DNA of 64,000 nucleotides from assembly GCA_964199315.1 (NCBI GenBank), contig OZ116703.1:9238001-9302000 (forward strand). The letters run 5' to 3'. Each line of letters begins with the position of its first letter. Position 1 is the first letter of the stretch. The translations under genes were made by a program, and so were the position numbers. This stretch comes from Orbicella franksi. Taxonomy: Eukaryota. The notes beneath the pieces are model-generated. The model was given only the letters and a program-made list of their open reading frames with translations, was not told the DNA's origin and ran no database searches. Below are positions 55,054 through 64,000 of this stretch, in pieces.

Positions 55054-55759
55054 CTGCCACATAAATATAGTGCATTCATCTAATCAAAAATTTGTTGAAT
55101 TTGAACTACACTGAATGCTTGTCTATCCCCCACTGAAGGTCAAAACTAACATGTGCATGGGGAGAAGTCCCTATCACTAGGCCCTTCAACCATTTTCCAG
55201 AGCCCCTTTGTGTGAATATCATTTTTGCCAAGAAATCTACACCCATAATAGAGAAGAATGAAAATAATTAAAGTAAAATTAACGATAGAAACAATAGGAC
55301 GAATACAGGTTGAGTGACACCTAAAGTCGCAACCAAAATGCAAGGATTCGACTGTCCATGGCAGGCTTGGATTTCATGTGTTATAGCATGCAATTACTCA
55401 ATACATGAACATGTGTACAACACATTCTTTCACGACAACAAAGTGCGATTCCATTCATTCGAATGTCCCAATTTTGTTCTTCGAGTGTTCGGACCCAATC
55501 GTTCGATTAAGTTCGATTGATTTCGATAAAGTTCGTTTAATCGAACGTTCCATTTGGTACGTGATTAGTTACGTCTGGAGCAAAGCCATGCATCTAAGAG
55601 AAAGCTTCTTTTATGAATAAACATTTGGCGCATCCAACCAAGAAATCGCCAAGCATTACCCGCGTATGTCTCAATGTAAAATACCTGAGAATACGCTTCA
55701 AAAAGTTACGAGGGTTGTAAACAAAAAAATGAAGTTTAAGCAGATAAAATAAACAGATA

Positions 55760-56147
55760 CCGTACCGTTAAAAATCCTGGGCTAAGAACTACATGTATAT
55801 CCAATGTGGCGATCGATGCGATCCTCTTGCTTCGTTTTGGCGGTCGTAACTTTTGGCGCAAACGGATTTTCCGGTCGATTTTCCGCTGACCCGCGGGTGC
55901 CCGGTTCACTCGATACACACTGGGTATCACCCGTAAAAATGATACCCAAATTACCGGGCAGCAGCCGCTGTAGTACGTACTATAGTACGGTATATATGAT
56001 ATGAAGTCGAGCATAATGGCGGCTTGACCGGAGGTGCACATACAGGAGAAATTTGGACAGCTACAGAGCTTTTTTCAGTTAAAAAGAGCGTATTCGGGAT
56101 TTATACTGGGAATTTTTCCTATTTACGTGAACACGAAAGCAAAGGTC
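55760..56147. promoter_or_regulatory. CpG-rich island, candidate bidirectional promoter
   Basis: Locally CpG- and GC-rich relative to its flanks. Lies between the KDZ ATG (56148) and a minus-strand donor near 55764. Confidence 0.35.
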
Positions 56148-59100
56148 ATGGGCCGGTTAGTGTTTTTTTTTTTTTGGATAACTTAAATGTGATGTAGCGA
56201 TTCGTTTTGTTTTGAAATTCAGCTAATCCTTTACCTGAGGTTTCTCTTTCTTATGCTTATGACTACCTTCCTTTATTTTAATTCCTCAGCCGAAGGAAAC
56301 GTTTTAGGGCAGAAGTGAACGTGAGGTATCACCAAGAAGATGGTGTCCAAACTAACAGGTTGGAGCGGCTGAACGCTGTTGGCGAGACGAATGGTATAGG
56401 GTTTAGTGGTAATGCTGATGCCGATGAGCCGGGCCATGAAATTGATTTAAATGCTGCAGCACCGGACATGGAACAATCAGATGAAAGTGATGGAGCAGAG
56501 ACGTCCACCACCAATCACTACCAGAGGCTGCAAAGAGCAGGGAATGCTTGGTCAAAGCTACGAGAGGGTGTTTTGGCAACAACAATTGAAAACCAAGCGT
56601 CTTTATTTGATGAGAGGTGCCACTTCTGTGAATCAGAAGCTGGTGTCTGTCGTTGTCTTGACTGTGGACCTTCAGTCAGCTTTTGCAAGTCTTGTGCTGT
56701 TTCAAGGCACACCAAATATAACATTTTTCATCACGTTGAAATTTTAACTGTAAGTCTTCTCTCCGGTTTATACTTTGTAGTTGTAAGTTTTGAAAAGTAG
56801 AAGTAAGCGTGATACAGTACGTTCAAACCTTGCCCTTAATTTTACAAAGACATTTGGTTACTCTTGCCTTTCTTCTATTTGTGTTTTCTTCGTTATGTAA
56901 AAGCTTGGTCTTTTAAGGCATCTGCAGTCCACTCTGTTTTATTGACTATCAGTGACTCAGCCTCAACCCACAAATATAGGTTCACCTAATTTTGTAGTTT
57001 GTGTGTAGTTCATTGTTTGTCATTCATGAGATTATTAGCATGTGTAAGACCCACCAAGTCAGCTTAGAGATCTTTCCAAGATATGAAGGCCAACTATTTA
57101 AAGTTGTGTTCCATAAACAAAGTGGGGTCTCCTGTTTTCGTAGGGGATCATGGCCTGCTGACGATTTTTATAAGCACATGCATTGAAATGGCTGATTTCT
57201 TTATTCAACACACCTGTTGCATTGTAGGCTGTTGATGTGTGGTGCAATCATATTAGTTTATTCAGTTGTATTACAGATTTATAGTTATGTTGAATGATCT
57301 AAATTGTATTTTTAATGTTTCAATTAAATATGTGTTTTGTTTAGGACTTAAAGATCTATGTCCCCTTAGAAATGGAGCGAATCTTGGTACTTGGCGACCA
57401 TCATTGTTCTAGTACATCTACTACTGGTAGCTCTGTCCTTTTCCGTGAAGTAACTGTTGTAGACTCTCGAGGTTAGATATGTCAGCTAGCTTACTATGGT
57501 GCCGTGGAGTGTCTAATCTTATGTAGACAGCAATTTAATGTTACATATCAGTCTTCATAAGTACATATAATTTTTATCTTTAAGTCCCAATTTATAAAAA
57601 AAAAAGAGAAAAGGATGTGTCTGCCACAGGGCATACAGTAATGTTAAGATCCTGATATAGGCTTCTTCGTAAGTACATTTAATTGTGATCTTTCAGCCCC
57701 AGTTTGAGAAAATGAGGATGTGTGTACTAAAGAGCGAACAGTAATGTTAAGATTCTTCTAGAGGCAAATTGATATTAATAGTAGTTGTAAATCTTGTTTG
57801 TGGGAGAGGCAACAAACAGTGAGTTGGTATATTGTTAATTTTAGGATTCTGTTCTGTAAGAACATGCCTTGCTGGTGTGTATATTCATTGACAGTGCACA
57901 TTTTCTGTAGACAGTTCTTCATATGTATACATGTATAAATTATGTAATCTATCTATATTTATATTTATGTAGGCTATCAAACAAAAGTGAAGGTGCAGTT
58001 TTGTAACTGTGAACCCGATTTTCTGCGGCTGTTACGTTTCAATCTTTGGGGTGCAACACCAACAAACCCTGAGTTGGCATTCACTCTTGATTTGATGAAG
58101 CTACTACACACCCTGAATCTTGAGTGTCAAGTAGCTGTTAAAGACTTCTGTGCTGCCCTTGAGATCCTGACAGATGATGTTATCGTCTTTTCAGTGAGGA
58201 CCACCTTTGATTCATATTCTTTCTTGTAATATTATTCTTTATTTTCTGCATCTATTTCTTTATGCTTCCATGTTTTAAGAGCAAAGTAGGCTGTTTGTGC
58301 CTTAAACAATCTTGCTTGTTTTTGAAGTACAACAGTGCTCGTTGCTTATTTCTCACAGTATATATAATGATGATACCACATCATTTGTAGGTATTTCTGT
58401 TATATTTTTGGAACCCTCCTGTATTTTGATATATCCCACCATTAGTTTTTACCTTAGGAATACTTACCTCAAAACACTGTGGGTATGAAATTTAGGTTTA
58501 AGATATAACCAACAAGTTGCGGCTTGTACATTACTTTAGATATGCATGTGTGCCTTTTCAGACAATTTTTGTTCCAAGGATTGCGATGGCTGTCTGTTTA
58601 CATTGTACCTATAACTGGTTTGTTTTTAGAACCAAAGAAAGCTATATCCAGTGGTCATAGACAGTCTTGAAGAATTTAGGTTTGTTCTATTTTTATGTCT
58701 CCTTACACCTTACTTATTATTGAACTACATTTGTAGTACTAGTTACTATTTATTTGTATTAAGTGTTGAGCTCTGAACAGTACAATGTTGCTGTTTTTTT
58801 GCATGTTATATTGTCATAAACTATCCACTCTTAAGTTCACAGTTAGTGCTTGTAATGCTGTTGAAACTATAGTGTGTCCTGCATGTCCCAAGGTATGGAG
58901 AATGGTGAGGTCAATATTGTAAGTACAGTGAATGTCTTAATTGACAATCTGACATCCTTTGATTGAAACAGAAGGAGATGGGAATGGCTGATATTGCCTG
59001 AGATTGTATGTTGATGACCTTTGAACACTATACTTTTAGTTCACTGTTGGGACTTCTAGTTAGCTTTGAATCCCTTAAGCCTGTTTGAAATTGTTTTGCT

Positions 59101-62100
59101 GAATGCTCATGAAGTATATCATTATGGGCCATGTTTGGAGACTTCCCTAGCTAGTTGTATAGACAATCTAGGTCTACCTAGAAAGAGATTGTTCAGTTGC
59201 CTAATCACTCTGTGTTAATTAATACACCTTTGCAGACTCAGGGTACCCTTCTTGAATCCATGGATGCCTTGTTTATTGGCCGAAAAAAGTCAGCAGGCAG
59301 AAGTGTGAGAAATCCTCTCTTTGGAACTGTTTTGTTTGATGATGACACAGAGGTGGAAGAGTTTGTTCAGCAACATCCAACAACCAGTAGAGCAAATGGG
59401 GTGTGTGGAAACCTGTTTTCTCCAGCAGAACTATTTGAGACATTAACTGACTGAAACTATGTTGATACAGGGCTGTTAAAATTACATTAGAAAAATGATC
59501 TGGTAGTGGGAAAGTGCAATGAAGGGTGGGGAAAGGCAGGTATTTACCTAAGATTATTACATTAATTGTATATTGTCTTAACTACAGCAGCGGGAATCGC
59601 CCAGCTGCATTGTGAATATCTCTTATTATTATTGCTATTAGTCAATTTAGATTGACTATTTAAACCTTAAAAATGACAATGATATTTTTTGTTGTTTCTC
59701 CTGTACTTAGACTCACAGAATTGGATCATTTTTTGTTTCATTTAATTATAAGGTGTGTGGTGACTTTCTTGCTGGTGATGCACTACGTTCAAGATCTCAA
59801 TATTCTGCCCTCAGTGAAACTGCCATATTTGGGCGGGCCTGTCGTCATGAGTTTCCCAAAAAATTTGTCAATATGAAACATGGTGAAAGGTAACATTTGT
59901 TTATGTTGTACTCCTTTACTGAATTGTCACTGTCAGAATTGCTTTGATTAATTTATTGATAATTTCTTTATTTCCTACCTTCCTTCCTTCCTTCCTTTCT
60001 TTCTTTAATTCTTTCTCTCTTTCTCTCTCTCTTGTTATGTAATTTTTGTTAAAGGATATAACAACATCAACAACAACAACAACATCCTCTTTATTACCCT
60101 TTTTTCATTAATTAATTAATACAGAAATATATAAAATATTGCTAAAAATTAGGGTTCTGGCAACCCGAAATAACCACTAGGTTAAAAATGCTGGGTTGCC
60201 AGTTTACAAATTGGTTAGTCAATGCTTTAATTTTGTGTCTAATTTTTAATTCTATGTTTTAATTTTGTTTCTAATAGGCCTGCATACCCAGTTTGGATGT
60301 TGCAGAATCTGCTTGAGGAAATTGGTGATCAGTCCACAGATGTATGCATGCTTTATGATATTGCTTGTCACCTGGAAACTCATTTACAGGTTCTGTTATC
60401 ATTTTTTCATTTACTATTTTCATGAAAGGTCATGTAGATCTTATAACAAAGTCTTTTAAGCACCAGTTAAGCAATGAAGTTTTTAATTTTGCTTTGATGC
60501 AATATTACCACTGTAGGCCCAAGGACAGCATCACATCCTACAGTCTGTCAAGTTTGCCATTCCCATTTTCCATAGCTATGGACACAAAGCAAAATGCCAG
60601 GTTTGCTTAAATTATTCAGTTGACATCTGCTCATGTGTGTACATGTGTGTTTTTGTTTGTTTGCCACACTGTATATCATGTTTTCTGTCAGAAAATTTGT
60701 CACAAAATTTCTTGGTGATTATTATTGAAATGTCCACTTATTTGAAACTAACTGTATGTCAAAAAAGTAGTATTTTAAAAAAGATGAGCATGTATGGCCA
60801 CCCTGTGTTATGGGGTCAATGTTTGTGTTACTGGGATTGAACAGCATTTGTACTGTGTATTTAGTTCTGTTTTGGTGAATTGTACTGATTTCCTAGATCA
60901 AATACAGTCCCAGGAGAGTTCCTGGCTTTGGTCTCACAGATGGTGAAGTCATGGAGAGACTTTGGTCTTTTTTACGGAGATTTGGAAAAATGACCAAGGA
61001 AATGAGGCCAAACCACCGGGTGGATGTTCTATCTGATGCTCTTTTCTTTTATGCCAAAAAAGGATCAGCAAGTTTAGGTTAGCTGAATGAACTTTTCATT
61101 CGTGCAATGTCAGTAGCAGCTTAATTAAGAAATTGTTGTTTAGGAAGGATTTCTTTGCATGGTTCCCGTGAACTTCTTTTTTACAAAAATATATGCCTCT
61201 TTGTTGTATGCGTTACAAGCAAATTTTGCCCCCTCTAGTCTTCTCCTTTTCCTTTTGAAACCCTTGGATGGCAAGAAAATGCTGAAATTCTCATTTAAAG
61301 AATAGTTGTTTAAGAACCATCAGCTTTAACTAATATTTTATTTTTAAGGGAATTTTATTTTCATTCCATTTGTTTCCCCCAGGGAAACTTTTGTGTGTTC
61401 GCATGAAGAAAGCACATTTGGTAATTAAAGATGCAGAGGAAGAATTGTCAAAATTGCAGGATAGCCTTACAGGTCAGATTGTTTTGCTTCCTCCTGATAA
61501 TGTTGACTGCTGAACTCATCTGTGCCTGTTGCAGTTGGAGTCATGTACCTAACAGATTCATTTCAGTCTTTTGAGAATTATGTCACTTTTCCTTTCAGAA
61601 ACAGGCGATTTTTTTTTCTGTATTCCATTTCCTTTCCTTTTGCAATGTCCATGCAAATTAGACATGTTTATATTATAACTACAGTATGTTCACAAGAAAA
61701 TATCAACACGGTTTTATACATGTAAGCTGTCGAAAAGGTTTGAATTGCTTTACACTGGTACTAATATTATAAAATATTCATTTTGCAGTACCGGTTCGAA
61801 GGGAAGATGTTGCTGAATGGGCAAAGCAGGAAGCAGAATGGACAGGAGGATTACATAACCCAGTTGAAGAACCCTGTTGGAGACATGGCTATGTAATCTA
61901 CCTTAAAATGTTCTATGAAATCCGCTCAAAATGGGAACAAGCATCTGACCCTGATAAACTTCAGCAACTTTATGGACAGTTGACCAAGTATGTATTTTTG
62001 GGGGGATTTAGCCTATAATTTTTAATGCTTGTTTGCTTGCTTTTAGTGGTAAATGCATTTTTTGACTATATTTTGGTATGTACCGTTGTTGCTGCATCAT

Positions 62101-63348
62101 TTAATCAAAAGTGCTTTGTTAGGGTTGGGCCTCTTCAGAGTGTTTGATAGAGAAAAAGCCTATCATGCCACATACATTACGTGACATTTTACCCTCGGGC
62201 ACAGATTCTTTTTCAAATCTCCTCTATTCCTTTGTCAAAATCACTTTATACCGTGTAGCTCAATTTTCAGCAGCATTGGATGAAAATAAATGTGTGTATA
62301 AAATATTTTGTTGGATTTTATTAGATTAGAAGGAGTTTTGTCAGATTTGGAGCACAGAAATGGCATTACTCAGCGTTGGACTACTGCTTGTGAAGAATAT
62401 CGGATGGCTCGAGATGCTGCCTATGACCGAAGCAAAAGGGTTGCTTTAGTGAAACTGCATACAAAGGTTGTAGAACGGTGGTTCTTGTTGTGCTTGAAGG
62501 CGAAATATGCTGGCAAGTATTTTACCCAAATTTATGTATTTAAAAAGCTGGAGCGATTTGAGAGTCATGAAAACTGGTATCCGGTGTGATTGTTTGTGTG
62601 CAAGGAGATACGTGAAGTAAGAGCGGACCTGCCTCTTTTGCTAATCTCGAGAAGTTCCTGTGAAACGTATGTTAAACTCACAAACTTTAATTATCAACAT
62701 GTATTTTCAGGGCCGTAATGAAAACCGCCGTTGGCGAGGGGGTTCCCTGGTTAAAAATTGCTGTTACTATTATTGTTATGATTGTNNNNNNNNNNNNNNN
62801 NNNNNNNNNNNNNNNNNNNNNNNNNNNNNNNNNNNNNNNNNNNNNNNNNNNNNNNNNNNNNNNNNNNNNNNNNNNNNNNNNNNNNNNNNNNNNNNNNNNN
62901 NNNNNNNNNNNNNNNNNNNNNNNNNNNNNNNNNNNNNNNNNNNNNNNNNNNNNNNNNNNNNNNNNNNNNNNNTAATTGTGCTACTCTGTTTACTTCTCTT
63001 AGATGGTCATGCTCTTGCCAAACGGCTCTCCAAACAAATTTCGCAAGCAACGAAGGCCATGGTAACTTCTCTCAATGAATTCAACAGACTTGAGTGCAGC
63101 AGTGATTGGCCACTGCCTCGCTCGTTCGAGGTCGATGAAGTTAAAAATCCGGAAACAGAAGCTTTTTTTTGGAGCCGACAGACATCCCTTTAAAGAACAA
63201 CTTTGAAACGGAAGAGGATGAACGAACTTTTCTTAGCCTTCCGGAAAGTGCTGATGGACAAGCCAGTGACAGTGACAGTGATGATGACACGGAATATGAA
63301 ACTGAAGTCACTGATGATGCTGATAGTGGTTTCAACAGTTTGACCTAA
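56148..63348 (+). CDS. KDZ (Kyakuja-Dileera-Zisupton) superfamily transposase with N-terminal CxC cysteine cluster, 15 exons, ~775-825 aa
   Basis: Phase-consistent exons: 56148-56155, 56290-56749 (CHFC..RCLDC..CKSC..H..FHH), 57345-57471, 57973-58193 (FCNCE..LWGATP..AF), 58630-58679, 58781-58892 (CPACPK), 59236-59400 (MDALF), 59753-59889 (CRH), 60278-60389 (YDIAC), 60517-60600 (FHSYGH..CQ), 60897-61077 (GLTDGEVMERLWS), 61383-61472, 61789-61987, 62325-62512 (GC donor), 63003-63193. The acidic tail to 63348 needs a +1 correction in a T8 run. Confidence 0.85.
62786..62972. other. Assembly gap (N run) inside KDZ intron 14
   Basis: Run of N. The flanking exons join in phase as KYA-DG, so probably no exon is hidden. 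Confidence 0.99.
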
Positions 63349-64000
63349 TTAATACAATTTGCAATGTTTGGATTTCTTGTACGAGGAATTTATCATGTTA
63401 CAAATCTTGCGTTAAATTTATGATTCCACGATCACTGTACAATTAAAGTGCATTTTGTCCACCCTCCAAAGAAGTCTGTTTTATTGTGAAATGAACTATG
63501 CCGTTCCAGACGGTTGAGTGACATGGGAACGAATTAGTCAGAAATTAATATTCTGACGACACGTTGGAGAGATTGGCGCGGCATGATGGGTTAACCGGGA
63601 GTAGTTAAGGGCCCATTAACCGATTTATGCGCGCGCTCGCGCGCGTTATTAAGGGGGGGGGGGGGGGAAATTTCACTTTCGGTTACTTACGTCAGCCTGA
63701 GCGCGGAAAATAAAAACAACTCAATAACTTGCAAATTCGCTTACATTTTGGATGTTTTCCTTTGTTTTTCACAAAATGCAGAGTAAAAAAAGTACAAGAC
63801 AAAATAAGAGAAAGACAGAAAAACAAGAGCAATAGAAAGAGAAAAACTAGCTCCGGGTGTCTTTGTTTGATCTTACCAAAGTGCACTAGTAATGTAAATA
63901 GCGCACGCGCTGATAGAGTAACTTCCAGTATATTTCGGGCGCACTTCCGGTTTCTTTAAATATTAAAGGAAACGCGGTTTTTCATTAAATCCAGCCTTTT

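Follow-up and report, generated by a model that had tools for sequence, protein, structure and literature searches.

Transposons of the KDZ (Kyakuja-Dileera-Zisupton) group, their intron-richness and their presence in animals are already known. A recent survey (Kojima 2025, PMC12730594) assigned 8-bp target-site duplications to Zisupton and Dileera, and 7-bp duplications to Kyakuja, whose CA..TG termini were reported without inverted repeats. Zisupton, known from the fish Xiphophorus and from Pristionchus nematodes (Bohne et al. 2012, via PMC12730594; PMC9297572), is an animal KDZ element with terminal inverted repeats, recent bursts of activity and a multi-exon transposase gene that resembles a host gene; KDZ/Zisupton transposase genes of Pristionchus contain 18-31 exons (PMC9297572). 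In the ESM Atlas, CxC2+KDZ architectures are commonest in Basidiomycota and CxC3 clusters in Chordata, and KDZ clusters of the CxC2 type are frequent in molluscs, arthropods and basidiomycetes. One Hydractinia gene has been listed as a 'likely KDZ transposase', and a search of the literature found no paper describing a delimited KDZ element in a cnidarian. The present study concerns a 64,000-nucleotide stretch of the stony coral Orbicella franksi (GenBank assembly GCA_964199315.1, contig OZ116703.1, positions 9,238,001 to 9,302,000 of the forward strand; hereafter the window), in which an original prediction, made from the sequence alone, had placed an intron-rich, near-intact KDZ-type transposase gene. 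We argue herein, with a probability of about 0.9, that this gene is the transposase of an autonomous-type, 18.98-kb cut-and-paste KDZ DNA transposon, and not a host gene.

The coral element resembles Kyakuja of the fungal Agaricomycotina (Kyakuja-1_LB and Kyakuja-2_LB; PMC12730594) in its 7-bp duplications, its 5'-CA...TG-3' termini and a KDZ core preceded by CxC-type cysteine clusters. It differs in its animal host, its 14 introns, the presence of an open reading frame (ORF) with a PHD finger and the lack of a TET/JBP dioxygenase gene. The original prediction had cited the fungal association with TET/JBP genes, which does not extend to this element: a genome search with Tet_JBP (PF12851) matched a single locus, on contig C8. 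Zisupton, in contrast, makes 8-bp duplications (PMC12730594), as against 7 bp in four of four coral copies; its protein reaches 1400 amino acids (~770-820 in the coral element), and the coral cysteine cluster scores as CxC2/CxC1, not CxC3. The family is young, low-copy and, by its structural hallmarks, Kyakuja-like. Intron-richness had been stressed in the original prediction; the feature itself stands, and the Pristionchus genes show that it is not new. Several coral gene models, namely Acropora palmata LOC141889079 (XP_074630358/9), A. digitifera LOC107328048, Montipora foliosa XP_068690588 and Desmophyllum pertusum KAJ7371614, share the N-terminus (MGRRxKRF or MDRKRKRI), the cysteine clusters and the exon 2-6 boundaries, and cluster representatives are 43-65% identical to exon 2. 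These models are partial (175-320 amino acids), belong to other sub-families or species, and are named only 'uncharacterized protein'; for none of them has a transposon with ends been described.

The case for a transposon begins with the limits of the unit. When the window's own genome (497 Mb, 805 contigs) was searched at the DNA level, five further copies emerged at 98-99% identity, introns included: one on contig C7 (C7m), one on C10 (C10m) and three on C13 (C13a, C13b and C13c). The six copies thus occupy four chromosome-scale contigs (C6, which holds the window, C7, C10 and C13) and lie 1-2% apart, with introns as similar as exons. Similarity begins at the same base in five copies (~55900 in the window) and stops at the same base 10.9 kb past the window end, at extended coordinate 74877; here and below, positions are in window numbering, and extended coordinates continue that numbering beyond 64000. 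Each terminus was found in the genome only in the family copies plus one diverged relative apiece. Intact copies start with CACCCGGTTCAC and end with GTGAACCGGGTG, a 12-bp inverted repeat with CA..TG tips, and the CACCCGG...CCGGGTG termini recur in C10m, C13a, C13b and a diverged relative.

Moreover, all four copies in which both ends are present are flanked by 7-bp target-site duplications. Perfect direct repeats surround C10m (GGAAACC), C13b (GTCATTT) and C13a (TAATTTT), and the two flanks of the window copy agree at six of seven positions. The alignments between copies revealed no flank homology beyond the termini. The window copy interrupts a host repeat, uninterrupted copies of which read ...GACCCG CCGGTGC AATACT... 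(L045-L047); since these represent the empty site, the window copy is a filled site with the duplication CCGGTGC. The copy-number and flank comparison proposed with the original prediction therefore yielded six copies with sharp ends, 7-bp duplications and differing flanks.

The gene itself could be rebuilt as predicted. A three-frame reading of 56100-63400 with exon assembly joined 15 exons in phase (56148-63193, plus strand; Table 1) into an ORF of 766 amino acids with zero internal stops; 12 introns are of the GT-AG class, one is GC-AG and one GT-AT. All of the motifs named beforehand are present and in order, at residues 113 (CHFC), 313 (CPACPK), 327 (MDALF), 403 (CRHE), 445 (YDIAC), 474 (FHSYGH) and 498 (TDGE) of the spliced protein. 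When Pfam was scanned with single exons as queries, in line with the proposed check, exon 4 matched CxC2 (54.4 bits, E 1.6e-14) and CxC1 (45.5 bits, E 9.4e-12), and exons 8, 9, 10 and 11 matched KDZ (PF18758) colinearly, at profile positions 53-97, 102-132, 145-164 and 166-212, with 22.1, 20.6, 18.2 and 43.9 bits (E 3e-11 for exon 11); exon 11 alone exceeds the cut-off of 26.6 bits. A genome-wide six-frame search with the KDZ profile recovered exon 11 too. Candidates for a D...D...E triad occur in order as D328 (MDALF), D446 (YDIAC) and E501 or E504 (TDGEVME), the first being matched by eye, and the columns YD.AC, FH..H..C and E line up with those of other KDZ families in this coral genome. 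The divergence from those families was too great for a tblastn comparison with the transposase and the PHD ORF. Exon 2 retrieved 417 relatives at E<=1e-3 from protein representatives, all of them short ORF-style fragments, and no full-length relative was found among them.

Table 1. Coordinates of the transposon, its transposase gene and associated features (window numbering; strand as reported).
Feature	Position	Strand	Remarks
KDZ transposon, left 8.1 kb	55901-64000	+	18.98-kb unit, continues to extended 74877 (= C6:9312877); boundaries common to five or six copies at 98-99% identity (C7, C10, C13)
Left target-site duplication of window copy	55894-55900	.	CGGGTGC, 6/7 match to right copy
Truncated left terminal inverted repeat	55901-55909	+	CCGGTTCAC; terminal 3 bp including 5'-CA lost relative to CACCCGGTTCAC of other copies
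Exon 1	56148-56155	+	ATGGGCCG, donor GTTAGT; encodes M-G-R (first 2 nt of R); N-terminus matches Montipora foliosa and Desmophyllum homologues
Exon 2	56290-56749	+	Basic N-terminus, acidic linker, first Cys cluster (CHFC...CRCLDC...C..C)
Exon 3	57345-57471	+	Junction 57471>57973: 43+11 reads
Exon 4	57973-58193	+	CxC2 cysteine cluster; junction 58193>58630: 45+18 reads
Exon 5	58630-58679	+	RNA junctions
Exon-6 acceptor, mutated	58803-58804	+	AT in window copy and three others; AG in C13c and C7m (58804 T>G)
Exon 6	58805-58892	+	88 nt; LYCHKL...CPACPK; skipped in most transcripts
Exon 7	59236-59400	+	First catalytic Asp candidate (SMDALF, D328); junction 59400>59753: 75+20 reads
Exon 8	59753-59889	+	KDZ profile 53-97, CRH motif; RNA junctions
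Exon 9	60278-60389	+	KDZ profile 102-132; second Asp candidate (LYDIAC, D446); RNA junctions
Exon 10	60517-60600	+	KDZ profile 145-164 (FHSYGHKAKC); RNA junctions
Exon 11	60897-61077	+	KDZ profile 166-212 (GLTDGEVME, Glu candidate); RNA junctions
Exon 12	61383-61472	+	Flanking junctions: 51+14 and 91+16 reads
Exon 13	61789-61987	+	Helical region; 95+6+4 reads to exon 14
Exon 14	62325-62512	+	Ends at GC donor (GCAAGT, 62513); junction 62512>63003: 68+22+2 reads
N stretch	62786-62972	.	187 positions, wholly within intron 14 (62513-63002)
Exon 15, coding part in T8 frame	63003-63193	+	Stop TAA 63191-63193
T8 run	63163-63170	+	Frameshift relative to ancestral reading
Acidic tail ORF	63169-63348	+	59 codons, +1 frame, cut off in window copy
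Right terminus	extended 74866-74877 (L033:1866-1877)		GTGAACCGGGTG; right end of window copy
Right target-site duplication of window copy	extended 74878-74884		CCGGTGC, beyond window end

Splicing of the family is directly observed. Raw polyA RNA-seq reads from runs labelled as this species (X23 and X24; X21 was nearly silent) were aligned to 57340-63339, and 12 of the 14 junctions, those from exon 3 through exon 15, appeared as split reads, with 19-95 reads each in X23 and fewer at the exon-6 junctions. For a thirteenth, exon 2 to exon 3, loose read ends at 57345 hold the last 30 nt of exon 2. The junction between exons 1 and 2 was drawn from a GT..AG pair and from the N-terminus MGRR(R/K)KRF conserved in coral homologues: the window reads MGRRRKRFRAEV, Montipora foliosa MGRRKKRFKAEI, Desmophyllum ..MGRRRKRFKAEI and Acropora palmata MDRKRKRIKAQL. 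The original prediction had counted the GC donor of intron 14 (GCAAGT at 62513) among three soft lesions, each of which lies where it was placed; this donor is no lesion, since it is used by all 92 junction reads between exons 14 and 15. The same reads connect 62512 to 63003 across the N stretch and in phase (G|AT = Asp), so that no exon of the main transcript is hidden there and the reading frame runs through unbroken. The genome sequence of the region differs from the window only at these 187 positions, which are therefore masked rather than unread, and the three paralogous copies that hold the region align colinearly on either side. Thus, the KDZ transposon family is transcribed and spliced as modelled.

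A few features of the introns and exons were noted in passing. At 60976, in exon 11, a G>A change in C10m, C13a and most RNA reads creates an extra AG acceptor, which competes evenly with the normal one (20 versus 19 reads in X23) and drops 81 nt in frame, the GLTDGE motif included. The first 8 bases of exon 8 repeat the start of intron 7, GTGTGTGG (59401-59408 and 59753-59760), so the RNA junction is ambiguous over 9 letters. A direct repeat at intron borders can mark the mode of intron gain. The diverged C10 paralogue described below has a shorter intron at the position of intron 7. A stretch of ~160 bp in intron 8 (60060-60222) recurs at dispersed sites of the genome, in at least 30 copies with 71-96% identity, and is probably an insertion of a miniature inverted-repeat transposable element (MITE) or a short interspersed element (SINE).

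The two remaining soft lesions proved real. At the exon-6 acceptor, AG represents the older state, because C13c and C7m keep it and because the Acropora palmata isoform X1 begins the exon at the same residue ('EEFR|IYRHNL'). The consequence of the AT acceptor is visible in the RNA, where 41+8 reads join 58679 to 59236 and only 5 enter at 58805 (7 leave exon 6), so that exon 6 is skipped in ~90% of junction reads; loss of its 88 nt shifts the frame and leads to a stop at codon 313. The inclusion reads may derive from the AG copies. An in-frame CAG at 58778-58780, suggested beforehand as an alternative acceptor, and further candidates at 58836 and 58847 are used by none of the junctions listed.

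At the T8 run, two copies show T8 and a third T7, and a fourth has T8 with a G>T change after it. In the RNA, T9 is found in 16/142 (11%) and 5/30 (17%) of reads, and the extra T puts the acidic tail in frame. A related fragment from another coral (L048:10383-10709, reached via P0173) has the same tail frame open and conserved: once its ~319-bp insertion is set aside, exon 15 and the tail share a frame, and the comparable distance is 36 nt, versus 38 nt in the window, which puts T8 out of frame by +2 and T9 in frame. On these comparisons, T8 is a true frameshift of this sub-lineage and no artefact of assembly. The opposite view, that the T8 frame is ancestral, had been suggested by the continuation of P0173 in the exon-15 search and was rejected, as that continuation is read-through into the ~319-bp insertion. 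A search for homologues of the acidic tail returned the window's own ORF as its sole match. Directly before the T run, at 63161, a ~316-319-bp insertion with a 3-bp duplication (AAG) occurs in copy C13c, in RNA contigs (X1) and reads, and at the same place in L048 (10103-10421), which marks an old sub-lineage of the element.

The window copy is the least damaged of the six, yet the description 'near-intact' overstates its condition. In addition to the AT acceptor, the T8 frameshift and the loss of 3 bp at its left tip, it carries ~5 private amino-acid changes (D174, N230, Q389, P420 and G540), at sites where the other copies that hold them agree with one another. Furthermore, at the private positions 57396, 58067, 58088, 59799, 60280 and 61062, 100% of RNA reads carry the other allele, from which it follows that the RNA seen stems from other copies or from an individual without the window copy. 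Because of these lesions, including the T8 truncation of the acidic tail, and because none of its private alleles occurs in the RNA, the window copy is probably no longer autonomous or mobile; loss of the left terminal CAC would likely block its own excision.

The other copies record both movement and decay. C10m and C13a have in common a 1.7-kb deletion (56287-57984) that removes exons 2-3 together with part of exon 4, insertions of 4 bp in exon 6 and of 2 bp in exon 7, the nonsense change R334* and the loss of 6 bp from exon 11; they nonetheless lie on different contigs, between different duplications, and are 0.87% apart. Since lesions are shared and sites are not, a defective derivative must have been mobilised in trans, which needed a then-working transposase. 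In C13b, 59679-64237 is missing. C7m, truncated at 61757, has also suffered two 1-bp deletions, the nonsense change R94* and damage to its exon-2 acceptor. In C13c, exon 2 has lost 1 bp, and three insertions are present. Five of the six copies therefore have frameshifts or large deletions, and only in the window copy are all 15 exons in frame. Its exons differ from those of the other copies by 0.6-1.05%, and its introns by 0.5-1.3%. Among the copies, 47 distinct exon substitutions were counted, 17 synonymous and 30 non-synonymous (three of them nonsense), for a crude omega of ~0.5. Transposon copies would be expected to show this pattern of substitution and divergence; a conserved host gene family would not.

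Beyond the transposase gene, the one long ORF of the element lies on the minus strand at extended 70051-71154 (L029:7051-8154) and has 368 codons, with mucin-like S/T/P-rich repeats, a basic patch and, at the C-terminus, a PHD finger with a weak score (E 2e-4). Four other copies contain this ORF too, two of them with stops, and its product may serve the transposon as an accessory protein. Beyond that weak PHD finger, no Pfam domain was recognised in the remaining ORF pieces of 63.3-74.9 kb. Direct repeats of 0.5-1.5 kb fill the 3' third (extended 71544-74570) and could plausibly be subterminal repeats that bind the transposase. A mechanism can be sketched on this basis. The basic N-terminal patch (MGRRRKRF) would act as a nuclear signal, the CxC2 cysteine clusters would bind both the termini and the subterminal repeats of the 3' side, and the RNase-H-like core would use D328, D446 and E501 (or E504) in TDGEVME to cut at the CA/TG tips and would integrate the element with a 7-bp stagger.

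Several other repeats and KDZ relatives were encountered in the genome. The host repeat around the insertion (55300-55897 and L033:1878-2477) belongs to another repeat family, with more than 30 copies at 87-99% identity and local clusters on C6 at 26.6-26.75 Mb, on C9 at 9.9 Mb and on C11. A second KDZ-bearing element of a different family, ~19.7 kb in length, is nested in the right end of C13a (C13:15192737-15212416); it has inverted repeats of at least 60 bp starting CAACACGGTCTCC, a 7-bp duplication (TCGTACT) and the KDZ match L008. Diverged relatives of exons 4, 5, 7 and 8 (84-92% identity) lie at C10:2518194-2536616, where the exon-4 match occurs three times at intervals of ~8.2 kb, a spacing suggestive of an older KDZ paralogue arrayed in tandem. 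At C10:7543832-7544158 (minus strand), a KDZ-like ORF keeps CRH and H..H..C, and YN replaces the YD of the family, so that the second catalytic Asp is lost.

Two other origins for the gene and its copies have to be weighed against a transposon. The gene might be a domesticated KDZ transposase, single or in a small family, kept for a cellular function, with introns that reflect long residence in the host; its 14 spliceosomal introns, polyA transcription and retained catalytic motifs would suit such a history, as would the annotation of coral homologues as ordinary genes and an omega below 1. A domesticated gene does not account for the sharp common ends, the 12-bp inverted repeat and the 7-bp duplications at four unrelated sites, one of them with matching empty sites, or for introns and flanking non-coding DNA conserved as much as exons. 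Six dispersed loci, five of them with frameshifts, nonsense codons or deletions, and a deletion derivative that has transposed argue the same way, and multi-exon transposase genes are normal in animal KDZ elements (PMC9297572). We therefore consider domestication very improbable: where the original prediction had left the choice between an active family and a domesticated gene, the ends, duplications and six copies decide for a transposon gene. Alternatively, the copies could stem from segmental duplication or assembly redundancy, with the KDZ gene as a dead passenger, an origin compatible with the low copy number, the three copies on C13 and the large unit of 19 kb. Ends identical to the base on four contigs are hard to reconcile with it, as are differing flanks that each bear their own perfect 7-bp repeat, a window copy that splits a repeat of which other, unsplit copies display the precise empty site, and another KDZ element nested in one copy, also with a 7-bp duplication. 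This origin appears to us the least likely of all.

A KDZ transposon being preferred, the question becomes whether the family is still fully active, with an intact master (AG acceptor and T9) present in the population and missing from the assembly, and with the window copy perhaps mobilisable or weakly functional. T9 in 11-17% of RNA reads, junction reads that use the exon-6 acceptor, the existence of AG-acceptor copies, a youngest pair only 0.87% apart and abundant transcripts in polyA RNA all speak for such activity. On the other hand, none of the six copies in this genome is free of lesions, and the window copy lacks the left CAC that its own excision would likely need; full activity is thus possible, although we lean against it. 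More doubtful still is the broadest proposal, that no structurally complete KDZ transposon of the Kyakuja type (7-bp duplication, CA..TG tips) had been described from an animal before this one, and that the family may still be mobile in coral populations, where transcripts with AG and T9 could give a working transposase that moves 17-19-kb copies in trans. Some observations also tell against the transposon as we describe it. With zero lesion-free copies in the assembly, current autonomy has no intact copy to rest on; the Kyakuja label comes from structural hallmarks, and the 12-bp inverted repeat departs from fungal Kyakuja, reported without any. The catalytic residues are assigned from motif alignment. 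Finally, the junction between exons 1 and 2 has no read support, exon 1 being outside the read-covered stretch, and RNA with the same species label never carries the private alleles of the window copy, so that expression of that copy is not supported by the reads.

For genome annotation, these results mean that this gene and its five paralogues, which look no different from ordinary multi-exon genes, should be labelled transposon genes. For transposon biology, they provide a fully delimited animal KDZ element, of which the ends, the 7-bp duplication and an empty site are known, as is a deletion derivative mobilised in trans, and whose 15-exon transposase is verified by RNA. The occurrence of Kyakuja hallmarks without TET/JBP cargo bears on the distribution of the three KDZ lineages outside fungi. 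If the family is indeed a mobile one of the Kyakuja type, it would be a candidate large-cargo DNA vector native to reef corals.

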